A stretch of 64,000 bases of DNA, from assembly GCA_002104945.1 (NCBI GenBank), contig MCFH01000045.1:390261-454260 (forward strand). Reading direction: 5' to 3'. Positions 1 through 59,019 of the stretch are shown one piece after another. The position numbers and the translations under genes are program-made. Within the stretch, counting starts at the first letter, position 1; every line of letters begins with the position of its first letter. The notes below the pieces were generated by a model. That model saw only the letters and a list, made by a program, of their open reading frames with translations. It searched no databases and was not told where the DNA came from. The DNA is from Piromyces finnis finn. Lineage: Eukaryota > Fungi > Neocallimastigomycota.

Positions 1-2268
1 AGTATTACCAGAAGAATTATTATCTGTAGCATTATTAGAATCATTACTTGATGGAACTAATGCTTTGTAAAATTCAATTGGAATACCATCCGGACCTGAT
101 GCTTTATAATTTGGAGTAGTGAGGATAGCTGACTTGACTTCATCAATACTAATATCTTGGTTGATATCCCACTCATCAAGCATAGGAAGTGAAAAACGTT
201 TATTCGTTGGTTCTTCATACCAATGCTCCAAATCAAGACTTACACCACTTGGGTCTGATGCAAGATTTTCGAAATGATCATGCCACACTTCTAGTTGTTC
301 TTCCGTAGCAACAACTAATTCTCCATTTTTATTTTTAATTGGTTGAGCAATAAAGAAAGAATCTTTTCCAATTTTTGCAGTTTTCTTGATCCATTTCCAG
401 GCCTTCTTAGGATTATGACTCTTCATATACTCACATCCTGTTTTAATCCAATGAAGATATTCTTGCTTCCTAAATTCATTACATCTTTTGTGGATGTAAT
501 CAATGAGTTTACGGTAGATTTTAATTCTTTTAATAAATTCATCTATATCATAAATTCTTTCTTTTTTAAATCTCTTATACAACTTCATTTTGATTTTTTG
601 AAGATTAAAAATTTGTTGTGAAATATGAAATGAAGACTTTATAACATTATTTGCTGAAGTAATACTGAGCTCGTCTGCAATTGAAAAAGCAGTTGAAGTA
701 AACTCTTTGGAAAGTTCATCTGTAGAAACATTAGGATCGTTGAATTTTGCTGAAAGTATTTGGAATTTATTATGACTGAGAATAGATTCCTTTTCCTCAA
801 TACATTTTAATCTATTCCATTTCAGAATTTTCTTAGGAACATTAAAGTCATTAGAAAAATCTTCCATAGGAATAATTTTACCATTAATAAGAAGTGGCTT
901 ATGGTCTGATACAGGATAAAAATTATTTATAAATGATCCTGAGTGAATAAGATCTTTCATCTTCGAATTGATAAGAGCATGGTCAATGTCGGAAGATTGA
1001 TCACCTCGAGTCCAAGAGATAGTAGACCCTCTAAGCGGAAGAATTTCCCAATCTCCTAATCCATTAGTTGATAACCAGTTGGATAATTTTACTTTAGACA
1101 TATTAAAATCACCAACAAGAATCGATGGATGGGATGAATGAGTTTGTAACCACAAGCGAACTTCTAACTTTGCATGATCAACATAGATGTTGTGATGACT
1201 ATGAGGCATATAAACATTACCAATCGAGCATTTGAATCTATTCCAGAGACTAAAAGTATAAATAGAAATAATATACTTTCCAGAGAAGTTTTCAAGTGAG
1301 GCTTGACATGAATTGTGAAAACCTAAATATAAACCTCTCATTCCCGGAACTGATTCGTCAGCTTTCTTGAAAAAGTGTCTATAGTTTCGCAAAGTAACAC
1401 GACAAGGATAATCTGTATTCGATCCAGAACCATTACCAGTTTCTTGGAAACATAAAAATAATGGTTTGAAAATAGCTGTGAAATAGCTAATACTATCTCT
1501 CTTTTCGTGATTCCACCCATTGGTGTTCCAACTAAGACAAAAAGAAAAGCTATCAGGCTTGTTGGATGAGGAAGAATCGTTGCTATTATTATTATTATTA
1601 AAGTCATCGTTATTAATGGATGATGCATCAGAGGAATAAGTAGAACTATTACTAGATGGCTGTGAAACTGAAGAACTATCAACTATTGAACTGTTATCAG
1701 AGTTGATAGAGCTATTAGAATTAATTGTTGAATGTTGAGATTGAAATTGTGTTTGCTGTAGATCTGGAATATTTTCATGATGGGAAACTTGTTGAAGATC
1801 CTGTTGAAGATCTTGTTGAAGATCGGATTGTTGATGAGATTGTTGAACTGATTGTTGAACTGATTGTTGAAATGATTGTTGAATAGAATGTTGATGTTTA
1901 TTAGAAACTAAAATTTTACGTTTGAGAGTGGAAAAAGTGTATTTGTGATTCCTTCTACTACGAGCTGAAAAGGAAATTGAGGTAACTGAAAGTTTCTTCT
2001 TTAACATGTGTAAGATTTTAATACAATCTTTTGATGAACCATGAACCTTGACTAAGAAAAAGTGATCATTGAAAGTTTGAAAATATTTAACACTAATAAC
2101 TGAATTAAATTTATCTTCTAGAATAACCTCGAGTTTTTCCCATAGCATATTTACTGACCATGATCGAATACCACGGATAAAGAAGGAGCGAATATCATCT
2201 AAGGGGATACCATAAGACCGGGTACCACGTCTGATATAATTCTTGTCTTTAATATAAAGGACTGACAT
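1..2268 (-). mobile_element. Non-LTR retrotransposon (LINE), single long ORF: RRM-like N-terminus, Q/S/N-rich linker, AP-endonuclease, start of RT region; runs off the window at position 1
   Basis: Hand translation gives 756 uninterrupted codons from ATG 2268 to position 1. APE motifs occur in order: SWNTNG, LCFQET, GNVYMP, LVGDFN, SDIDH, SDHKP. The pre-RT motif KASGPDGIPIEFYK follows. It is not in the ORF track, probably because there is no stop inside the window. Confidence 0.92.
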
Positions 2269-2864
2269 GATAATAAATTCTAATTAAAAATATTGAATAT
2301 AAAATAAATACTAATAAAAATTATAAATATAACGTATATGGAAAAAAAATCTGTCTCTCTCTCTTCTTAAAAGTACTGGATAGTACAAAAATTGTTACGA
2401 TGCTTTGTTTAAAGTTTCTTTTTTTTGAATTCTAGTTGTAAATTTTCTTTAAAAATTCTAGTTTTGGTTTGTTGTTAGTAAATTCGAATCGCTTTTTGAC
2501 ACTAAACTTGTTTGACTTTACTTTTCATTAAATATTTAAATTGGTAAAAAATTTGAATCAAGAATGTCGACACCAGAAAGCTTGTGAATAGTATTTTTAC
2601 ATGATGTAGAGTGAATCAGTCTCTTACAAGAAACAATACAACAATAGCTACATGAATATAAAAATACAATGCAAATGCTAAAGTTGACTACATTGGATTC
2701 TTACAAGAGAAGAGTAGTACTACATGAATACATGAATAAAAGAAAAAATACAGCAACAAAATGTATTACTCTTCTAATTAAATACTATACAAACTTACCT
2801 GAATATCAAACATTCAACTTATTCATCAAATACTTAAATTCGATGGATAAATGTTTTTTAATCG

Positions 2865-3506
2865 CTCAGTACCATGAGCTTAGTCCTAATAATTTTCCCT
2901 TAAAGACTAACCAAGCATCCATTGCGCAATGCTTGGATTTAATTCTTCCTACTCTCTCAGTACCATGAGCATGAGTAGACCCCCTTGAGAAACTACATTT
3001 ATTAAATAAATGAAGGCACGTTTCCAAGAGGGCACCAAGCATCCATTGCGCAATACTTGGATTTAATTCTTTCTACTCTCTCAGTACCATGAGCATGAGT
3101 AGACCCCCTTGAGAAACTACATTTATTAAATAAATGAAGGCACGTTCCCAAGAGGGAAGCTTAGTCCTAATAATTTTCCCTTAAAGACTAACCAAGCATC
3201 CATTGCGCAATGCTTGGATTTAATTCTTTCTACTCTCTCAGTACCATGAGCATGAGTAGACCCCCTTGAGAAATTACATTTATTAAATAAATGAAGGCAC
3301 ATTCCTAAGAGGGCACCAAGCATCCATTGCGCAATACTTGGATTTAATTCTTTCTACTCTCTCAGTACCATGAGCATGAGTAGACCCCCTTGAGAAACTA
3401 CATTTATTAAATAAATGAAGGCACGTTCCCAAGAGGGAATGAGCATGAGTAGACCCCCTTGAGAAACTACATTTATTAAATAAATGAAGGCACGTTCCCA
3501 AGAGGG
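2865..3506. repeat. Modular tandem array of hairpin units (basic period 124 bp, higher-order period 281 bp)
   Basis: Modules: A (TTAGTC..GACTAA) at 2880 and 3161; B (CCAAGCAT..AT[G/A]CTTGG) at 2911, 3035, 3192, 3316; C (TCTACTC..GAGTAGA); D (CCCCCTTGAGAA..TTCCCAAGAGGG) x5, ending at 3506. Confidence 0.95.
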
Positions 3507-4190
3507 ATCATTAACTAAATTACTATCTAAATTAGATTATTATTGTTAAGGCCAATAACAAAATGCACAATGTAAAAATGATAAAACTTAACGGACTCCT
3601 TTCTTTATATCTATAGATTTTATGAATTAATCTCTTACTTTGATAATGCAAATTTCACTTATTTACAAAATCTAAAATAACATAAATTATCAAAATATAA
3701 TAACACACGAAATACAGTCATTTCAACTATTATATATGCTTAAAAGTATTACTTTCAAAAATTAATGATAAGGACAAATAATTTTAATTATTTTATATTA
3801 AATTAGTTTTATTTTATTTTTTGCCTTATTTTTGTTTAGTATAAATAGTATTATTATTAGTTTATAATTAATTTTTCAATATTGCTTTTATTTTATTACG
3901 TATTTATTTTCTTTTTATTATTTGATTAATTTATTTATTTATTTATTTACTTTTTATATTTGCATTAAATTTTTTTTACTAGTTTATATAAAAAAAATCT
4001 TTTTAAAAATTTTACTTTTAAATATAAAAACAAAATCTTTTACTATTTTATAAATAATTTTGGGAGGGATGGTTTATAAATATGCAAATTTTTAATTCAA
4101 CGTAAGAATTTAAAAAATTGGTCACTGATTTTTTTAAAAACCTATTTTGACTTAAAAATTTTAGTTTAATAAATTACTTTTAAAGGCAAT

Positions 4191-6730
4191 TTACATCTTT
4201 TCGTGGAAGGTACGGGCAATAACTTCCTTTTGTTGAGCTGGAGTTAACTTAACGAAGTTAACAGCGTAACCAGAAACACGGATGGTAAGGTTTGGATAGT
4301 TTTCTGGGTGAGCCATAGCATCTTCAAGAGTTTCACGCTTGAGGACGTTGACGTTAATGTGGTGAGCACCCTTGGTGAAGTAACCATCTAATAAACCGGA
4401 AAGGTTACCTTGACGTTCTTGTAAAGTCTTACCAATGGTGTTTGGAACAATAGAGAAGGTGTTAGAGATACCATCCATACAAGAGTCGTAGTTAACCTTA
4501 GCGACAGAAGAAAGAGAAGCAACAGCACCAGAGAATTCACGACCGTGCATTGGGTTACAACCTGGAGCGAAAGCTTGACCAGCCTTACGACCATCTGGAG
4601 TAGAACCGGTCTTCTTACCGTAAACGACGTTAGAGGTAATGGTAAGAACGGAAAGAGTGTGCTTGGCACCACGGTAAGTTGGGGTCTTTCTGAGCTTGTT
4701 GATAAGCTTGTCAGTAACAGTTCTGGCGAAGAAATCAACACGGTCATCATCGTTACCGAATTTTGGGAATTCACCTTCAATCTTGAAGTCAACAGTTAAA
4801 CCGGTCTTAGCATCACGGATTGGAGTGACCTTAGCGTACTTAATAGCAGAGAAGGAATCAGCAACAACAGAGAGACCAGCAACACCGAAGGCCATAAGAC
4901 GACGGACATCGGTATCGTGAAGAGCCATTTGAAGGGCTTCGTAACAGTATTGGTCGTGACAGAAGTGGATAACGTTCATGGTGTTGACGTAGAGCTTGGC
5001 AATCCAGTCCATAGCCTTGTCGTAGGTTTCCCACATCCAGTCGAATGGAATTGGACCTTCTGGAACTGGACCGAAGTCTGGACCGACTTGCTTACCGGTT
5101 CTTTCATCCTTACCATGGTTGAGGACGTAGAGCATAAGCTTGGCAAGGTTACAACGAGCACCGAAGAATTGCATATCCTTACCGAGTCTCATGGCAGAAA
5201 CACAGCAGGCAATACCGTAGTCATCACCGAATCTAGCGGACATAAGAGCATCAGATTCGTATTGAATGGAAGAGGTATCAATAGAAACCTTAGTGGCGAA
5301 GTCCTTGAAGTTCTTTGGAAGAGCCTTGTTCCAGAGGACAGTAATGTTTGGTTCTGGAGCTGGACCTAAGTTGTAGAGAGTGTTAAGAACACGGTAAGAG
5401 GTCTTAGTAACTAAGGTACGACCATCGCTACCCATACCACCAAGAGACATAGTAACCCAGGTTGGATCACCAGCGAATAAATCGTTGTATTTTGGAGTAC
5501 GTAAGTGACGAGCGAAACGTAACTTAAGGATAAGGTTATCAATGATTTCTTGAGCTTCAGCTTCAGTGATAACACCGTTCTTTAAATCGTTTTCGAAGAA
5601 ACAATCAAGGAAGGCATCAACACGACCAAGAGACATAGCAGCACCATCTTGTTCCTTGATAGAACCTAAGTAACCGAAGTAAACGAATTGAGTAGCTTCT
5701 CTAGCGTTCTTAGCTGGCTTAGAGATATCAATACCGTAGGACTTGGCCATTTGAGTAAGTTGCTTAAGAGCCTTGATTTGGTCAGCAACTTCACCAATCT
5801 TCTTCATGGTTGGTTCGTCCATTAAACCCTTTTGGAGTTCAACTCTGTCCTTTTCCTTTTGGGCAATAAGACGGTCAGTACCGTAAAGAGCAACACGACG
5901 GTAATCACCAATGATACGACCACGACCGTAACCATCTGGTAAACCAGTCATAATAGCGTTGGAACGACCAGTTCTCATTTCCTTGGAGTAAAGATCGAAG
6001 ACAGCGGTGTTGTGGGTCTTACGGTAGTCAGAGAAAATGTGTTCAACTTCCTTGTCCATTGGAACGTTAACAGCGGCAAGAGCGTTCTTGACCATGTTAA
6101 CACCACCGAATGGCTTGATAGCTCTCTTAAGTGGAACATCAGTTTGGTAACCGTAGATAACTTCGTTATCTTTGTCAAGGTAACCTGGCTTGTGAGAGGT
6201 AATGGTAGATGGAGTGTGTGGATCAACATCGTATAAACCACCGTTGGCACGTTCCTTGGCTAAGTATTCTTCAGCCTTGGCGAAAAGCTTCTTGGTCTTT
6301 TCAGTTGGACCAACAAGGAAAGAATCATCACCTTCGTATGGGGTGTAGTGCTTCTTAATCCAACCTTCGACATCGATTTCACTCTTGGCAGCAGCATCGT
6401 TAGTGATGACTGGAGCTTGAGTAGCGTAGGTCTTAGCTTGCATAGCTGGGACCTTCTTGGCAGACTTAAGAGTAGTCTTCTATTATATAAATTTTTTTAT
6501 TTATAATTTATATTAGTAATCTATACAATAATTTTATTTTTATCTTTTTTATTAAAATATTCTTGTATTTAATATTTTATTAAAATGTCATTAATATTTA
6601 CCATAGCTGGGGTGTGAAGAGCACGGGTTGGCTTGGCCATTCTGACACCAGCGACCTTGGTGGCAGCAACAGCATTAATAGAAACAGTGTTAGCAAGAAC
6701 ACTGACGTTGGATAAAGCTAAGCTTTCCAT
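4191..6730 (-). CDS. PFL: Pyruvate formate-lyase (formate C-acetyltransferase), ~805 aa, with N-terminal hydrogenosomal-type targeting extension; 2 exons (6730-6602, 6479-4191)
   Basis: Active-site IACCVSAM and C-terminal glycyl-radical RVSGY are present. GT-AG intron 6601-6480 joins [11 protein letters not shown]...HTPAM to [16 protein letters not shown] in frame. Codon bias is strong. Confidence 0.97.
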
Positions 6731-9700
6731 TTTATTTGTTTTAAATATATAAATTATTTAGTTTGACAAATTGTGAAGAAAAAAATTAAAGTGATTTTTA
6801 GCTCTATTTAAATGAATCTCGGTTAAATTAAATTTTATTTAAACGAAAATCAAAAAATATAAATCATATAAATAAAATATATTACAATATATTATTATAT
6901 ATTACAATATTAATTAATGTGAATATTTTTGTAATATATTATATGTAGTATGTATCTACCCTAACAAATTATATAATTAATCTTAATATATTACATAATA
7001 TATTATTTTTTTAATTTTTCCATTATTTCAATTCTTTCAAAATTAATATATTAGGATGAAATTTCGATATTGAAAATATCATAAAACTATTATATTATTA
7101 ATATATTAATTTATAATAGTAATTATATATTATCATTTTTAAAAATTTTCAATTTCTTAATTTTTTTATTATAAATGCATTCATATAACTATAATATCAT
7201 AATATATTATTATTAAAAAGTAATATAATAATATTACTATATAATATATTATTAAATATATTGTAATTAATTATTTTATATTTTATAATATAAATTCAAT
7301 AAATAGTATTAAAAATAATAATCTTCTAATTCTTTCTATTAATTATTTAAAACTATTAAAATATAAAAGTATTAATGAATTCAGTAGATAGTCTAAAATA
7401 TCATTCATATAAACATAATAGTATTCATAACAAATATTTAATATACATGTATTTATTATTAAAAAAAACTGTTTATTTGTAAATAGCACTCTTTTAAAAT
7501 AATAAAATAAGCAAAAAAAAAAAGTATACATAAGTTATATAATATATTTAATAAACTATATGTTAAACAACAAAAATATTCGAAAATATTATAGTATTTA
7601 CTTCTTATAGTATGTACTAAAATAAATAAAGAAAAATTATGACATAATAAATACATTATATACGAAGTATTTATTATTACTAAATAAGAAAAAATTACGT
7701 GTAAAAAAAAAAAAGATTTTTTATATTTTAAAAATAAAACTCCCCATAAATCCAATTAATAAGGATTTTTCATCATTAATTTAAGAAATACAATGTAACA
7801 TATTTCAGTAGAAATTTATTATAAATTATAGATTTTGTATAAAAATAATTTTGGTTTCTCTTAATATTATTTTTCTTAAATGAGAATGTGAAGAAAGATA
7901 GCTATTGAAATTAAAAAAAAAAAATTAATAAAACTTTTTCGTAATAACATACAAAATATATAATTTAAAAAGTAATTATATTTAAAAAATACACGATATT
8001 CATTATGTAGTTAAACTTATATTTAAATCTAAATATAGGAACAATCAAAAAAAATTTTAAAATTATTTTAAAGATGCCAATAAATACATAAATTCGAAAT
8101 AACTTTTATCTTTTTTTATATAAATGATAATCCTTTAGTTCCATTATTTCCATTAAAAATAATAGAAATTATAGTTATTAAATATTTTTTGTATTATCGA
8201 TTTTACCTTAAAAAAAAAAAAAAAAAAAAAAAAAGCATTTAAATAAATAATAAAACAGGTAAAGCTAATATTATAGTTTAAATTCTAATAATTTAAAAAA
8301 TTATAATAAAAGATTTGCAGCATTATTTTCGCATATTATAGAAAAAATTGAAAATACTTTAAAAGCAATAATATAAATTTTGATGAAGTTTTTATTAATA
8401 TGAATAAATAAAAAAATCTTAAATATTAATATATGTATGGTATAATAGCATTTAAAAAATAGTGAACATTCAATGTTTTTGTTATTGTTATAATTAAAAA
8501 AGTAATAATTCTTTAAATGGTTATATAACTTTACATTTATTTCTTTGCTATTCTATTACAAATTAAAGTTTGCATTTAATAAAAATTTTATTACTATTTA
8601 AAAAACTGCTTTATTCATTTATCGAGGATTTTTATTGAAAAACCAATTTATTACTTTTATTTTTCTCTATAATGTAATTTATTAGTTTTTATATTCTTTT
8701 TAAAAAATCTACACATATTAAAAATTTTAAATTGAAATTTTAACTATAATATATTATTTAATTTAAAATACTACCTTTATCATCATTTTTAATTATATCA
8801 CAATTTGGATAAATTAAATTTATTCTCCAATAAAAAATCAACTAATAATAATACTTAAAATAAGAAAGAAATTGACATACCAACAAATCCACAAATTTAT
8901 AAAAAAATAGGTAATAAAATATTAATAAAATATAATCTAAGGAAATACAAAAATGAAAAATACCAATATTTAATGATTGTTATAAATATTTTAAAATAAA
9001 TTATATACATATACTATTAATAATTTTTATAACTTAATAAAAATTATTTTAGAAATTTAGGAATAAATTACGATTAAGTTATTCTAACCTTTGATAATAA
9101 TGAATTAATTTATATAATAAATAACTTAATTTAAAGTAATATAAAGTATGTTTGTCAATAATAAAAAAGCATTAGATAAATATTGATTTTATTAAAGCTA
9201 CTTTAATCTTCCTACTTGGAATATTTTATCTTAGTATATTTTGAATTTTTTTTATATATAAAAAAGGTAATAAAGATTAATCGTCTTAAATAGTATAACT
9301 ACTAAAAATTCTTTATTATCATTTTTAATACAATTTCTTTACATCATAATATAAATGGTTGATTTATTATATATTTATAAAATTTTATATTCATTAAAAA
9401 AATAATAAATATTTTAATATAAATATATATTTCTTAATATTTTAATAATAAATAATGTATAAAAAATATGCAAAATGTATTTTTCTTTAAATCTTACTTA
9501 AGTATCATTATTATTAACAAAAAAAAACTAAACAACAATTTAGTAATTACCGTTTTTTAAACCTATCCCTTTTTATTTTTATAATAAGAAATCCTTTTTC
9601 ATTATTCACAATTATTCTATAATAAATATTTTTTCATTGTAATTTTAATTTCTTTATACTTCTTTTTTATTAAATGCATATAATTTACATATTTGAATAT

Positions 9701-39281: not shown

Positions 39282-44655
<5,374 letters not shown>

Positions 44656-45699: not shown

Positions 45700-47440
45700 T
45701 GTTTTTCTCTTTTGTTTTTTATTTTTTGTTTTTGTTTTTGTATTATTCTCTATGGTAATTTATAATGTTTGTTTATTTGTTTATTTGGTCTATATATAAT
45801 ATTGTTTTATTTTCGTTATTTAATTATCTTAATAATTTACTTGTTATTTAATGTTATGAAATATCTATTTCCGAATTTTAACTTTACTTATTTTTATTAT
45901 TTTATCTTTTAAATTTATATAACTTATGTTCTAAATAATATTATTCCTGTTTATTTACTGTTGAATTTTTTTATTTTCCTAAAATAAAATGTACATTAAT
46001 AAAGTTATTCTTTATTCTTTTACAATTTTATCTTATCTCTCAATATCTTGAATATTAGAATATTAAATATTGCATTATTTCTTATATTTCATATATTTAA
46101 TATTTTATTATTAATTTATTTGGAATGTGGTTATCGACTTTATTAAAATATTAAATAATTAAACTTCATATCAAAATAAATAAAAATAAATGAGTAATAT
46201 TAAATCCTTTCTTTTTTTTATTATTTGCTGTGATATGTTTAATTAGTATATCAATTTTTTAAGAATATATATATTAATAATAATCTTTACACTGCTTAAT
46301 GTTCTAATAAATTCTTTATATTAATATAATCTAATAATAAAATTAAATTATGATTTATAATATAACTATTAGTTTATTAAGGAGCATCCAAATAAAATAA
46401 AGCATTAATATATGAAGTAAATAAATATTAAAAATAATATTAAATGGAAAATTTAATAATTAATTATTCTTATGATTAGGATAAATTAATTATAATAAAT
46501 AACTAATAATAATTTAATTTCTCAATAATTGTTAATTAATGTTAATTTTATGTATTGTATTTATATATTAATACATAAAAATGAAAAATAATAAAAGATA
46601 ATATTTTATTTTAATTACAAATAATCGATTTTCTTGTTTATGTCAAATTATAAAGCTAAAAAGAAATAAAAATACTATTGATAATATGTAATATTAATCA
46701 TTTTTATCATCTACTTTTTTTTGCATTATTAATTCATAAATTCATAATGAAGTTGTATTAATTTTTTAATATAAATAATAAATTTTAGGGTTAGATTAAA
46801 AAATTATAAATAATTGAAAATATAAAACTTTAATATTTACGTATATAAGATTCATTAATAATATAAATAATCATATAATCATATTTAAAAAAAAAAATAA
46901 GATATAAAATCACAATAAACAGTATACCTTTAATTTTTTTTTTCTGTATTAATTCAAATTCTTTAAAATTGAATATTGAATTTTTATTGCATAAAATAGA
47001 AATAGGTATTCTAATTTTAGTATCAAAATTTTATTTTTTATATTACCAAATAATAAGCATTATATAATATGCATTAAACAATTTTCCCATATTTAATATT
47101 TCTTCATTCAATAGTATTAAATAAATACAATAAACACATCTTTAAATACCAAAAAAAATAGATATAATTGTAGTATAAAAATTATAAGCTTATTCATTAT
47201 ACCACCATTATTGTTGTTAGCTTTTATTTTTTATTTTTTTAAATATATTTTGAAAATTTCTATATTAGGTATAATTCTTTAATACTTTTATTAACTTTAA
47301 TAATTAATAAAAGTATTAAAATATATTTTAAATTTTAAATATTTTTTTTTACTTTTATGACAATAAATTAATAGTTTATGTATAAAATATTGTAGATAAC
47401 TAAGAATTTTAATTTTAATTTATATTAATAAGCTGAACTA

Positions 47441-47586
<146 letters not shown>

Positions 47587-48945
47587 AAGATTATGCGCCT
47601 CAATTAAGAATATAAGCTTTAAACATTTTGGCGTTAGTATAAAGTCACACAAAATTTATTTTAAAATATTTTAAATAAAAATATTTTTATAAATGGAAAC
47701 TTTAAAAGATAAAAAATATATTATAATTAAATATGAAATTCTTAATTAATTGATACAACTCAGTTCAATACACTCAGGTTTTGTGGAATGACTTATATAC
47801 TTTATTTATAAAATATACATACTCAATATTTATATGATCGTAAGAATATCTACTCCTAACTATTATATTCTTAGATAGAGACTAATTTACTATATTTTCT
47901 ACTAATTTACACTAAAATCTAACTATAAAGCTTGTTTGTTTATATTAAATACTATATATACTTTAATTTATCACATGATTATAAAAATATGATAAATACA
48001 TTAATGTACTAAATAAAATGAACTAAAAACTATGTTATAATCTATTTCAGTATTACATTAATTTATATTTATATAACATTTATAATAAAATTCAATTATA
48101 TTATTAAGGTTTTTATGTTCATTTTATATCATAATATTATGATGTATATAATTATTCATACATTTTTATTTAAAATATTTATCCTTAATGAAATTTATAT
48201 GTAATATTTTTTAAGTTTTTTTTATTTAAATGATATTTAATTTTATAAATTAAAATCAATATAAAATAATTTTTATTTCTTTATATTACAACTTTGATAA
48301 TTATTTGTTTTGTGTAGAATAAAATTAAATCAGCTTCAGACAGTGATGAAAGACGAAAAATTACTTCTAGACTACGTAGTAGTCTATTATATATTATATT
48401 AAAAAAACTTTATTCTTTATTTGTATTATAAAAATATAATGTTAATATTTCAATATTTTAAATAGAGTAAAAATATTAAATTATCTTTTTTTTTTGCAAG
48501 CAAGATGATTTATAAAAAGTTTAAATATTTATAGTTTTTACATAAATTATTCAATGCAACTAAGATAAATTATATAATATAAAAATTTAATAAATATTAT
48601 TAAACACTTAAAGAGTTTATAATATTTTTTTGAATAAATAAGAAAAATATTAAAAAAAAAAAGGTCAAACTTTTAACATTTAGTAGTAATTTTATTCACA
48701 TTTATATCTAATTAATATTTTCAAATTATTCTAACCTTTAATAAATTTAAAGGTTAGGTCATATAAATTATCATTTCTGTACAATAAAAAAATAATATAT
48801 AAAGTAATTAAAAAAATAATTAAAAAAATAGGTTTTAAAATTATTAATTCATATAAATTATCAAATTATCATTATATTTAATAAAAAAGAATATATATAT
48901 ATATAGCAATAACAATATATATATAGCAGGAGCATTATATCAAAC

Positions 48946-50799
48946 ATGAGAAAGAGTAATGAATTATTTATTTATAGTATTAATATATTTATTATAATTA
49001 TTAATTCTTTTATCGTTAAATGTCAATATTTTTTAATATTTATAAAAAAAAGAATACATTGATGAAAATGGAAAATTACATAGAAGGTATAATATATACA
49101 TATATACATATATTATATATTTATTTAGAAATGAATTTGGAATTAATATTTAAATTTAATTTTCATTTATTATTATTATTATTATTATTTTTTAATTATT
49201 TAATATTTTAATTAAAAGAAAACCTAAGACTGGTATTCTTTTATTGAATATTGGCTCTTCTAAATCGGAATTTCATACTCGCAATTATTTAACAAAGATG
49301 TTTACTGATAAAGATATTATACAACTTCCTTGTCAGAGTATATTAGGAAGATTTATTGCTTTTATGATTACAAAAAGAAGTATAAGAAAACATCAATTAA
49401 TTGGAGGTTTTGATTATGTTAATTATTGGACAAATATTCAAGCTGAAATGCTAGGAGAATATTTAGATTACCATTCACCTGATACAGGCATTGTATATTA
49501 AAATTTATTTATTTTTTTTTTTAAAAGATATTATACTATATAATATTTAAAAAATTTATTTTCTGTACTTATCTTTTATTTTGAAAATTAATTTTATTTA
49601 AAAATTAATAAATATTTTTATAAATAAAAAATAGCACCTCATATAGTTCTTCATTGCCAAAGATATAGTGAACCAACAGCCGATGAGGCTATTCAAAGAT
49701 TACTAAAATCCGGTGTAAAATTCTGTGTTGCTTTTCCATTATATCCACAGTATTCAATGACAACTACTTTAAGTAGCTTAAAAAATTTAGATAAAGCAAT
49801 AGATTTGTATGATTCTCAAGGAAAAATAAAATGGAGTGTTATTCAAAGTTTTAATAGTCATTCGGCATATTTAAAGGTAAATATAAATAAATAAGAGTAA
49901 ATATTATGTAAATACTTAGAATTTAACTTAAATATATATATATAATAATAAATTTATTTAATATTTTTATATAAGTATTCTGTTAATACTTATTTACTAA
50001 AATAATTATATTGCATTATTAAATTTTATTTACTTATTTATTTTTTAATAATTATTAGTTAATTGCTGATTGTATATTATCAACATTAAATGAATTTCCA
50101 AAAGAAGAAAGAGATAAAGTTAATGTTATATTTTCTGCTCATTCTTTACCATTAAAAGTTATAGAAAAGGGTGATCTGTATAAATCTGAAATTAAAAAAA
50201 ATTTAAGAAAAGTTAAAGAAATTTTAAATATACCAAATCCTATTTATCTTAGTTGGCAAAGCCAAGAAGGTAAAAATTGGCTAGAACCAAAGACTATTGA
50301 TGTTATTAAGTCAATTTCCTATATAGAAGGTTATGGGAATGCAAATATAATTGTTTTTCCTTTATCTTTCGTTTCTGATAATGTCGAAATTTTATATGAT
50401 ATTGATGTTCTTCAAGCAGATATTGCAAAAAAGAGTGGTATTAAATGTTTCAAACGTTGTGAATCATTTAATGATAATCCACAATTTATTGAAGCTTTAG
50501 GTAGTATTTTTCTTGATCACCTAAAACTTTTACATTCTGATACTAATATTGAGAATGAAGATGATCTAGATGATCTTGATAAATATTTAAATTTTGCTTT
50601 AATTGATAATAATATTAAGAGATATATTGACAGTTCAACTGACTTGAAGCATCGTCACTTCCAGAATTACGATGAAAGAAGAAAAAAAAACTTATCGTTT
50701 AACAACGGAAATATTATATTTTTTATTGTAATAATATCTTTATTTTCAATTATCTGTTTATTAAGATATTTCAAAAATTATGATAGCTTTTTTATGTAA
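48946..50799 (+). CDS. HEM15: Divergent ferrochelatase (HemH/Hem15 family), ~431 aa, with C-terminal transmembrane segment; 5 exons
   Basis: Exons 48946-48955, 49053-49086, 49219-49487, 49635-49876 and 50059-50799 sum to 1296 nt and stay open. Motifs: KPKTGILLLNIG, SPDTAPH..RYSEP, FPLYPQYSMTTT, FSAHSLP, GDLY, WQS..WLEP, SFVSDNVEILYDID, ESFNDNPQFI. Confidence 0.88.
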
Positions 50800-51380
50800 A
50801 CCAAAATATATATTTTTAAACTATCTATCCTTAAAATCAATATTAATTCAATGAAATTATTTTATTCATATATATGCTGATAAATTTTAATTAAATAATA
50901 TTTTAAAAATATAATAAAAAGTAATAGCAACTAAATAAGCTATTGTAATACACTAATAGCTTTTAAAAAATCGTTATAATCATTATTAATTATTATCTTA
51001 GGAATGTAATTTGCAATTATTGAAAAAAAAAAAAAAAAAAAAGAGTATAATGTATTCTATTAATTTTAATTAAAAAAAAGAAGACTTCAGCCTCAGAGTC
51101 AAAGAGAGGAATTAGTTGAGTTTGGCCTGTATTATATTATTGGCTATTTTTTTTTTTTTTTTTTTTTTAACAACGGGAAATAAATAAATAAAATTTTATT
51201 ATTAATTTAATTAAAATTATAATACATCTTATAAAAAATAAAAGTAAAAATTAAAATAATATGTTTAAATAAACACAAATGAATAAAAATTGGGTATAAT
51301 GTATTTTAGTAATTTTAATTAAAATAAGAAAGCTACTGCTAGACTAAAGTATAATAATTGTAGTTAAGATCAAAATTTTG

Positions 51381-52341
51381 TCATGGGACAAAATTATGAT
51401 CTCCATTAGTTGCGCTGGCCCTCCTGGCCTGTCTTACTGTTTCTTCAGCAATGATACTCTTTGTTGTTGCTTCAAACCTTTTGAACATTAATAATTATTG
51501 GCCAATAAGGTATTAAATAATATAATTTGAATTTTTCCACTTGTTAAAACATATAACCTGAGCTATTGTGCATTTGACTGACAATAGAGGAATATTTAAA
51601 TCTTTTGAGATAGAGTATAGAGATAGAGATATAAACAATACAGCTTTATGAACTCCGGCAACCCATCGTATTCCTTCGTTAACATGTTTCTGAGCAATCC
51701 TAGACTTAGCTTTGTTGGATCCAAGTAATGGTGCAAAATGTGAAACTCTATTGATCACTTGTGAGTTAATTACTAGCTTTTTGAAAGGAATAAGAATATT
51801 AGGATTTCTTAAGAATTTGCTGACTGGGAAAGGTCCTTTCAAAACCTTGTTATTAAGAGCTTTAATAACTGGTTTAAGGGACAAATTCTTATCAAGTAGA
51901 ACACCAATATAAATGTAGCAATCGGTAATTGAAATGGATTTTTCTGCTAAATAAAATGTTGGATCTTTCTTGTTCTGTTTTTCTAATGATTCAGGACGAA
52001 TCACCATCGTTGAACATTTCTGGATACCAAATTCCATTAATACAAATCCCATTCATTAACTCTTTTTAGTAACTTTTTAGCATCCTATTGATGGAGAACA
52101 AATAACTATATCATCTGCAAAAAGTCTACCACATCATTGAATGTCTCCTAAGCTAACTCCGAGATCTTCGCACTCTTTAAAAATATCAGTAATAAAGAGA
52201 TTAAAAAGAATAGGTAAAAGTAGGCAATCTTGACGGACTTCTTTCTTCACATCAAACGATTTCGAGAATTGACTATCTAATTTGACGTTAGTCTTAGATG
52301 TTAAATTTAAATTTTTGATAAATTGTAAACTCTTTCCTCTA
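51381..52341 (-). pseudogene. Decayed, 5'-truncated LINE reverse transcriptase (RT core to ORF C-terminus)
   Basis: Minus-strand translation gives EVRQDCLLLPILFNLFI (degenerate GVRQGCPLSP.LFN), LFADDIV and YIYIGVLLD, with in-frame stops and a frameshift between them. Confidence 0.88.

Positions 52342-55312: not shown

Positions 55313-59019
<3,707 letters not shown>

Follow-up and report, generated by a model that had tools for sequence, protein, structure and literature searches.

Why would an organism that makes no porphyrin of its own keep ferrochelatase? The question arises in several parasites and gut microbes, and among eukaryotes, the strictly anaerobic gut fungi allow it to be asked in unusually clean form. 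Here, we consider it for one five-exon gene of Piromyces finnis, located at positions 48946-50799 (+) of a 64,000-nucleotide stretch of scaffold MCFH01000045.1 (assembly GCA_002104945.1; hereafter, the window). The spliced coding sequence of 1296 nt encodes a protein of 431 aa whose translation is identical to the GenBank entry 'ferrochelatase-domain-containing protein [Piromyces finnis]', and the gene model proposed in an initial annotation of this DNA agrees with that entry residue for residue. While already annotated automatically in GenBank, the gene is apparently undescribed otherwise; a literature search combining ferrochelatase with Neocallimastigomycota, anaerobic fungi, or tail-anchored returned no account of the gut-fungal protein or of a tail-anchored opisthokont ferrochelatase.

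In the gut fungus Neocallimastix lanati, heme is experimentally essential and the heme pathway appeared incomplete, and an absence of de novo synthesis has been suggested for the entire clade (PMC8561657). This published auxotrophy fits the need for external haem that the initial annotation had cited from older physiology. Heme auxotrophs that retain working ferrochelatases include Porphyromonas gingivalis (PMC13096392) and nematodes (PMC3596385). The answer that we favor for P. finnis, while giving it no better than an even chance, is a cytosol-facing, tail-anchored chelatase that would turn scavenged exogenous porphyrin into heme outside the organelle. Salvage of this sort was one of three roles, beside de-chelation and tetrapyrrole sensing, that the initial annotation had proposed for a relocalised enzyme, a proposal that the data support in part.

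Catalytic residues of ferrochelatase are retained

Residues 18-338 of the P. finnis protein match the ferrochelatase family PF00762 along profile positions 1-315 of 317, scoring 254 bits versus a cut-off of 27, and each of the three large exons matches the family separately. Among solved structures, human mitochondrial FECH (E 3e-70) ranks first, followed by yeast Hem15 (2e-59), with the bacterial coproporphyrin ferrochelatases (CpfC) far behind at ~1e-22. An alignment of 56 sequences, comprising nine gut-fungal copies, 16 canonical enzymes (animal, chytrid, zygomycete, and aphelid), and 31 more distant ferrochelatases, served as input for an AlphaFold2 model with a mean predicted local distance difference test score (pLDDT) of 89.8 and values >90 in the core. 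When compared by Foldseek, this model superposes on human FECH with a root-mean-square deviation of 1.9 Å over 329 columns (E 1e-33; TM-score 0.86, normalized by target). The protein is thus predicted to keep the entire class II chelatase fold.

The initial annotation had pointed to a catalytic His within FSAHSLP and a catalytic Glu within SDNVE, and both assignments hold: His213 corresponds to human H263, the catalytic base, and Glu295 to E343. The His213 codon (50140-50142 [+]) specifies a residue that is invariant in 56/56 aligned sequences, as are, in human numbering, E343, F337, R164, Q302, S303, W310, D274, and Y276. The π-helix motif SDNVE, encoded at 50374-50388 (+), carries both Glu295 and Asp292 (D340), with Asn293 at the position of H341 between them. 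Further counterparts of the human active site are Phe289 (F337), Asn25 (N75), Trp259 (W310), and the pair Arg114/Tyr115 (R164/Y165). None of the nine aligned gut-fungal copies deviates at N75, Y165, or D340. Judged from these positions, the proton-abstraction network is predicted to be intact in the gut-fungal ferrochelatases. More broadly, of the 95 columns without variation among the 16 canonical enzymes, 55 are preserved in every gut-fungal copy and 40 are changed in at least one.

Apparent loss of the presequence and of the [2Fe-2S] ligands

Where a mitochondrial presequence would be expected, the gut-fungal proteins have little room for one. Their core starts at residue 18-23, compared with 38-65 residues, almost free of acidic ones, that precede the core in canonical opisthokont enzymes. 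Every gut-fungal copy with its N terminus present has 2-4 acidic residues among the first 15. The short leader contains a conserved motif, [YF]ID-x-x-G-x-[LI], which in P. finnis is specified by exon 2 (49053-49086 [+]) and modeled by AlphaFold2 as a β-hairpin rather than a presequence. In P. finnis, the closest in-frame stop 5′ of the ATG lies at 48910, 12 codons before it. In transcripts of orthologs, a stop in the same frame precedes the ATG by 3 or 13 codons, and the N termini of these proteins can hence be taken as complete. A short N terminus without presequence, as proposed in the initial annotation for a core beginning at approximately residue 18, is therefore a feature that the orthologs share, and the mitochondrial presequence is, as far as the alignment tells, lost in the gut-fungal lineage.

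The ligands of the [2Fe-2S] cluster are missing as well. Human C196, C403, C406, and C411 correspond to M146, F364, I367, and K372 in P. finnis, and none of the nine aligned gut-fungal copies has a Cys at any of the four positions, C196 being replaced by Met, Val, or Ile. The C-terminal C-x2-C-x4-C signature is likewise absent from the gut-fungal copies, and the lack of a C-terminal Cys cluster noted earlier for the P. finnis protein is confirmed. These Cys residues are present in 15-16/16 of the canonical opisthokonts compared, although they are not universal in fungi.

A predicted tail anchor within a lineage-specific extension

In place of the cluster region, the gut-fungal proteins have ~90 new residues, made up of an acidic stretch, a motif 15 residues long, a stretch rich in basic residues, and a single helix of very high hydrophobicity. 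All other complete copies that we examined (11/11; Piromyces, Neocallimastix, Anaeromyces, and unnamed transcripts) have the same architecture. The motif, LNFALIDNNIKRYID in P. finnis (50587-50631 [+]; residues 362-376), follows the consensus LN[FIL][AT]L[IV]DNN[IV]K[RK]YID in 12/12 gut-fungal copies, and a word-limited search with it returned matches in gut-fungal ferrochelatases only. Residues 335-431 matched no Pfam family.

The helix itself, IIFFIVIISLFSIICLL, is encoded at 50713-50763 (+) and spans residues 404-420, with a grand average of hydropathy (GRAVY) of 3.3. Its length of 17 residues is as first described, its distance from the end less so, since 11 residues follow it and not 12. 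A charge of +4 accumulates in the 12 residues before the helix, and the 11-residue tail after it has a net charge of +1. AlphaFold2 places a helix at residues 402-430 with a pLDDT of 82-93. The second-best 19-residue hydropathy window of the P. finnis protein reaches just 1.42, leaving a single predicted membrane span, as is the case in 12/12 copies. Across these copies, the helix has a GRAVY of 2.3-3.65 and ends 0-15 residues from the C terminus; in most of them, a charge of +3 to +5 precedes it and 0 to +2 follows, which is the positive-inside pattern. The sequence of the tail varies freely among copies while its hydrophobicity is retained (12/12). The initial annotation had named absence of the hydrophobic tail from orthologs or transcripts as an outcome that would count against its view; the tail is present in both, and in both of the paralogs described below. 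These tail statistics exclude model P0006 of Piromyces sp. E2, whose odd Ala-rich C terminus is probably a gene-model error.

Among 13 canonical opisthokont enzymes, by contrast, none has a hydrophobic C-terminal window; the best 19-residue Kyte-Doolittle value is ≤1.5 and never falls at the C terminus. A single helix within ~30 residues of the C terminus, with no signal peptide and no other span, is the layout of a tail-anchored protein, and the 12 gut-fungal copies conform to it. We also considered a CAB domain, and reject it: E-x-x-[NH]-x-R does not occur in the C-terminal 100 residues of the gut-fungal proteins (0/12), and residues 335-431 of the P. finnis protein match no Pfam family.

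A rebuilt active-site mouth

The mouth of the active site is rebuilt in the gut-fungal lineage. P79 and P131, which are invariant elsewhere, are both replaced in the gut-fungal copies, and the loop GGGSP has become GG[FY]SH in the lineage, with P. finnis showing GGFDYV versus the canonical GGGSPI. The altered motifs LLNIGSS, GGFDYV, and SDNVE that had been read off the P. finnis protein are all confirmed. The lip helix (human residues 106-118) has a mean hydropathy of 0.78-1.18 in the gut-fungal copies versus -1.19 to -0.06 in canonical opisthokont enzymes, so that the two ranges do not overlap. Two indels, a deletion of one residue and an insertion of three, occur in this clade alone.

At the start of the lip helix, P. 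finnis has the sequence LPCQS (49316-49330; residues 51-55). The Cys is found within LPCQ[SGN] in 9/9 aligned gut-fungal copies, at a position that is hydrophobic in the canonical enzymes shown in the alignment. It could be a new ligand or a lipidation site.

Two paralogs under purifying selection

Cluster look-ups and a focused tree revealed two paralog lineages of the gut-fungal ferrochelatase. Type A, defined by SDN[IV]E together with YPQYS, comprises the window gene along with Piromyces sp. E2 65898, Neocallimastix californiae ORY50133 (with a counterpart in N. lanati), and a number of unnamed transcripts. Type B, with SDH[IL]E and FPQYS and a support of 95/97, is represented by N. californiae ORY85196 (again also in N. 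lanati), a fragment in Piromyces sp. E2, and unnamed transcripts. Anaeromyces robustus ORX64230 keeps the His and sits at the unresolved base of the focused tree. The presence of both lineages in this tree dates the duplication before the Piromyces/Neocallimastix split, and the tree places the origin of H341N within type A. Across the gut-fungal copies, H341N and the replacement of Tyr191 by Phe are almost mutually exclusive.

A type B copy of the usual length was not detected in P. finnis. The Piromyces sp. E2 type B fragment (P0008, KZ151012.1) is flanked by long runs of N (1-5978 and 6779-8717); because it is bounded by assembly gaps, this 'partial' protein is best regarded as an assembly artefact, and it is uninformative on fusion or tail.

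Pairwise ratios of nonsynonymous to synonymous divergence (dN/dS) among four coding sequences were 0.13-0.22 for the core, 0.12-0.34 for the extension, and 0.13-0.26 overall, ratios that are rough since dS is near 1. Taken together, they indicate that the gut-fungal ferrochelatase lineage is under purifying selection. Three orthologs reside on contigs of 1.3-1.5 kb in which the open reading frame (ORF) runs uninterrupted across all four intron positions, tail included, between AT-rich untranslated flanks. We read these intron-free contigs as transcripts.

Evolutionary origin

The gut-fungal clade sits on a stem of ~2.1 changes per site (2.15), and in a maximum-likelihood tree it joins long prokaryote-type branches with a support of 90/95 (not starred). 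Such a placement, together with the occurrence of SDNVE in an Actinomycetota enzyme, might be taken to indicate that the gene was acquired horizontally from bacteria and is no vertical Hem15 ortholog, a proposal that concerns origin only and is compatible with any function. We consider it quite improbable. With a stem of this length in a long-branch setting, long-branch attraction is a likely cause of the placement, and a topology with the gut fungi among the opisthokonts is not rejected by the approximately unbiased test (p 0.08). Sequence scores are highest for animals and chytrids, with 253-264 bits to crayfish and chytrid sequences versus 204-210 for the top sequences from outside the opisthokonts. 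The core aligns collinearly with that of opisthokont enzymes and does not have the indels near residues 52, 101-105, and 166 that are typical of most prokaryote-type sequences. In addition, the P. finnis protein has the RKPKTG start in common with animal FECH, and its gene contains four spliceosomal introns. Vertical descent from a fungal Hem15 gene is the likely history.

A possible second route to heme

In our favored reading, the protein would be inserted into a membrane post-translationally, as tail-anchored proteins are, with its catalytic domain in the cytosol, attached to an endomembrane that would be either the endoplasmic reticulum (ER) or the outer membrane of the hydrogenosome, whereas the canonical enzyme works at the matrix side of the inner membrane. 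Its hydrophobic lip would dip into the bilayer, where the enzyme would insert Fe2+ into porphyrin taken up from the gut. A heme-auxotrophic fungus might in this way obtain, by a second route, the heme that its hemoproteins in the cytosol and ER require. With the propionate-binding lip altered, entry or binding of the porphyrin would differ from that in the canonical enzyme; the substrate might be delivered by the bilayer or by a carrier, or its side chains might not be the same.

Several observations weigh against this reading, among them the changes in that same lip. A recent review describes R115, Y123, and S130 as propionate ligands that belong to the small set of residues common to all ferrochelatases (PMC9133952). 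R115 is Arg (Lys in 2) in 47/47 other ferrochelatases and Ile or Ala in 9/9 gut-fungal copies; Y123 is Tyr in 46/46 other sequences with a residue at this column and His in 9/9 gut-fungal copies. S130 is kept in 7/9 gut-fungal copies and is Asp in P. finnis, which also has Ile for M76 and Asn for H341. The P. finnis codons concerned lie at 49367-49369 (I65, for R115), 49391-49393 (H73, for Y123), and 49412-49414 (D80, for S130), all on the (+) strand. Combined, the changes at R115, Y123, S130, H341, and M76 may impair canonical protoporphyrin binding. The replaced propionate ligands are, on the strength of the alignment, the main argument against canonical protoporphyrin handling and keep the other readings open.

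These sites do not all count equally. The H341N change that had been singled out in SDNVE is indeed present in P. finnis but is not family-wide, because 3/9 aligned gut-fungal copies keep the His. Moreover, Asn occupies the position in 7/31 non-opisthokont ferrochelatases, including the Actinomycetota enzyme with SDNVE, and as it recurs in such distant enzymes, H341N is weak evidence for loss of function. The changes at R115 and Y123, not listed in the initial annotation, are the more telling ones.

Other objections come from physiology, genome composition, and expression. That heme is essential in defined medium means that no internal pathway feeds the enzyme, and in the literature we found no demonstration of a metal-free porphyrin replacing heme. 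The rules for tail anchors leave the target membrane unspecified, and an AT-rich genome raises the content of Ile, Phe, and Leu anyway. Expression of the gene in P. finnis itself is supported indirectly, through 31-mer shares: four P. finnis runs from three studies contain 0.42-0.58 of the 31-mers sampled from 48700-51000, where 0.51-0.60 would be expected for exon-only RNA and about 1.0 for genomic DNA.

Alternative readings

Replacement of the propionate ligands might instead signal that chelation itself has been given up, leaving a noncatalytic tetrapyrrole binder that serves as a membrane-anchored receptor, chaperone, or sensor for heme or porphyrin, for example in the zoospore release that water-soluble haems and porphyrins have long been known to induce. 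We think this unlikely, while granting that it would account for the loss of R115 and Y123 in all copies and for the additional changes at S130, H341, and M76 in P. finnis, that it suits the very long stem, and that two paralogs could have divided roles. It also has a biological setting, in that haems and other porphyrins cause zoospores to be liberated, according to the statement in PMC7609409 that cites Orpin and Greenwood 1986. What it explains less well is the constancy of H263, E343, D340, F337, R164, Y165, N75, Q302, S303, and W310, which are invariant in both paralogs despite saturated synonymous divergence, whereas a protein that binds without catalysis would hardly be expected to keep the proton-abstraction network; and Asn in place of H341, as noted above, is shared with other ferrochelatases. 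A related proposal, to our minds distinctly unlikely, is that the enzyme was re-purposed after the pathway was lost, such that the ligand-less hydrophobic lip acts at the cytosolic membrane face on tetrapyrroles other than protoporphyrin IX, such as the chlorophyll-derived porphyrins abundant in the rumen, or that one paralog became a receptor for the release of zoospores triggered by haem or porphyrin. An intact catalytic network would equally serve the reverse reaction, in which iron is removed from imported heme, as an anaerobic stand-in for oxygen-dependent heme oxygenase, to feed the many Fe-S enzymes of the fungus or to detoxify excess heme. The fungus, a strict anaerobe, takes up heme, and a chelatase facing the cytosol, as suggested by the predicted tail anchor, would meet it there. 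We nonetheless attach little credence to this scheme: no sequence feature tells the direction of the reaction, loss of the propionate ligands is explained no better than by salvage, and with ferrous iron soluble in the anoxic rumen, scavenging it from heme seems a weak selective force.

The location, too, can be argued otherwise. The protein might reach the conventional site by entering the hydrogenosome with an internal or cryptic signal, its C-terminal helix then serving as an anchor in the inner membrane, a task that the lip performs in the canonical enzyme. Presequence-independent import does exist in reduced mitochondria, and the basic flank beside the helix resembles that of some organellar anchors. 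This placement nevertheless strikes us as very improbable, given the 2-4 acidic residues among the first 15 and the structured, conserved motif where a presequence would be, and given a helix 0-15 residues from the C terminus whose positive-inside flank matches the layout of a tail anchor; besides, hydrogenosomes have no known requirement for heme. Finally, one might suspect a decaying relic of the lost heme pathway, its hydrophobic end a chance product of AT-rich sequence. That 40/95 canonical-invariant columns are changed in at least one gut-fungal copy, and that the terminal branch of P. finnis is ~2x those of its nearest relatives, could be cited for it. We reject a relic or pseudogene as hardly conceivable, in view of a dN/dS of 0.13-0.26, frames that are intact in three genera and two paralogs, a tail that is hydrophobic in 12/12 copies, and the existence of transcripts.

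Comparison with known ferrochelatases

Set beside the opisthokont enzymes FECH and Hem15, the P. finnis protein belongs to the same Pfam family, adopts the same predicted fold (1.9 Å to 1HRK-type chains), and is 38-42% identical, with a collinear core, the catalytic His, Glu, Asp, and Phe, and the top-face Asn, Arg, and Tyr. It differs in what the gut-fungal copies have shed or exchanged, namely the presequence, the [2Fe-2S] Cys residues, R115 and Y123, and GGGSP, in its own changes at M76 (Ile) and H341 (Asn), in what the gut-fungal copies have added, a new C-terminal extension with a predicted tail anchor, and in its host, a gut fungus without a respiratory chain and probably without a complete heme pathway. 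Type II ferrochelatases of plants and cyanobacteria end in a C-terminal CAB transmembrane helix (PMC8529089) and hence offer the same plan of ferrochelatase core, linker, and single C-terminal membrane helix. The gut-fungal tails, however, have no CAB motif and follow a core of a different lineage; the C-terminal membrane helix is, on these grounds, predicted to have been gained independently. Closer in physiology are P. gingivalis HemH and the nematode ferrochelatase, both of which are last pathway enzymes kept without porphyrin synthesis of the organism's own and have a presumed role in metalation of scavenged porphyrin. Unlike the gut-fungal gene, which resembles a vertical eukaryotic gene that was re-addressed, the ferrochelatase of parasitic nematodes is of bacterial type (PMC3596385), and neither the P. 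gingivalis nor the nematode enzyme has been reported to be tail-anchored or to lack propionate ligands.

It is this combination that makes the gut fungi so clean a case: an apparently vertical mitochondrial gene whose organelle address seems to have been swapped for a tail anchor, with the [2Fe-2S] ligands gone and the two best-conserved substrate ligands replaced, around a catalytic network that stayed frozen. The case bears on how anaerobic fungi acquire heme, an essential and costly component of their medium, on the site of heme production or handling in cells that have no respiring mitochondria, and on which residues of ferrochelatase are truly indispensable. There is also a possible link to the 40-year-old observation of porphyrin-triggered zoosporogenesis.

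Gene structure and genomic neighborhood

Exon 1 (48946-48955 [+]) is tiny, consisting of the ATG plus 7 nt, and encodes Met1 to Lys3 plus the first base of codon 4. Following the leader motif in exon 2, exon 3 (49219-49487 [+]) contributes LLNIGSS, the lip helix, and the GGFDYV loop, and exon 4 (49635-49876 [+]) provides QRY, with the counterparts of R164/Y165, as well as YPQYSM, with that of Y191 and the Met at the position of C196. Exon 5 (50059-50799 [+], including the stop) covers the remaining half of the chelatase domain along with the entire C-terminal extension. Intron 3 (49488-49634 [+]; 147 nt) is of the GC-AG kind, while the other three introns are GT-AG; the junction created by its removal, ...SPDT|APHI..., is matched by the intron-free ortholog transcripts. 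The window as a whole is very AT-rich, and within the gene the G+C content is 26% in exons and 8% in introns.

None of the neighboring genes has a visible link to heme. They encode a 1471-aa protein kinase, ribosomal protein S25, a small Cys-rich protein, and an ARMH3_C protein, and a Pfam search of four neighboring ORFs yielded no match. Just 3′ of the ferrochelatase gene, a 179-aa ORF (51513-52052 [-]), which has no Pfam match, lies in a block of higher G+C content (~30%). The protein kinase gene is located upstream on the opposite strand (39282-42449 [-] plus upstream exons), and the C-terminal half of its product is a very long Asn/Ser-rich stretch of low complexity. Finally, the window contains long AAT/ATT-type trinucleotide runs at 47425-47652 and 57809-58178, which, depending on the frame, read as poly-Asn, poly-Ile, or poly-Leu ORFs.

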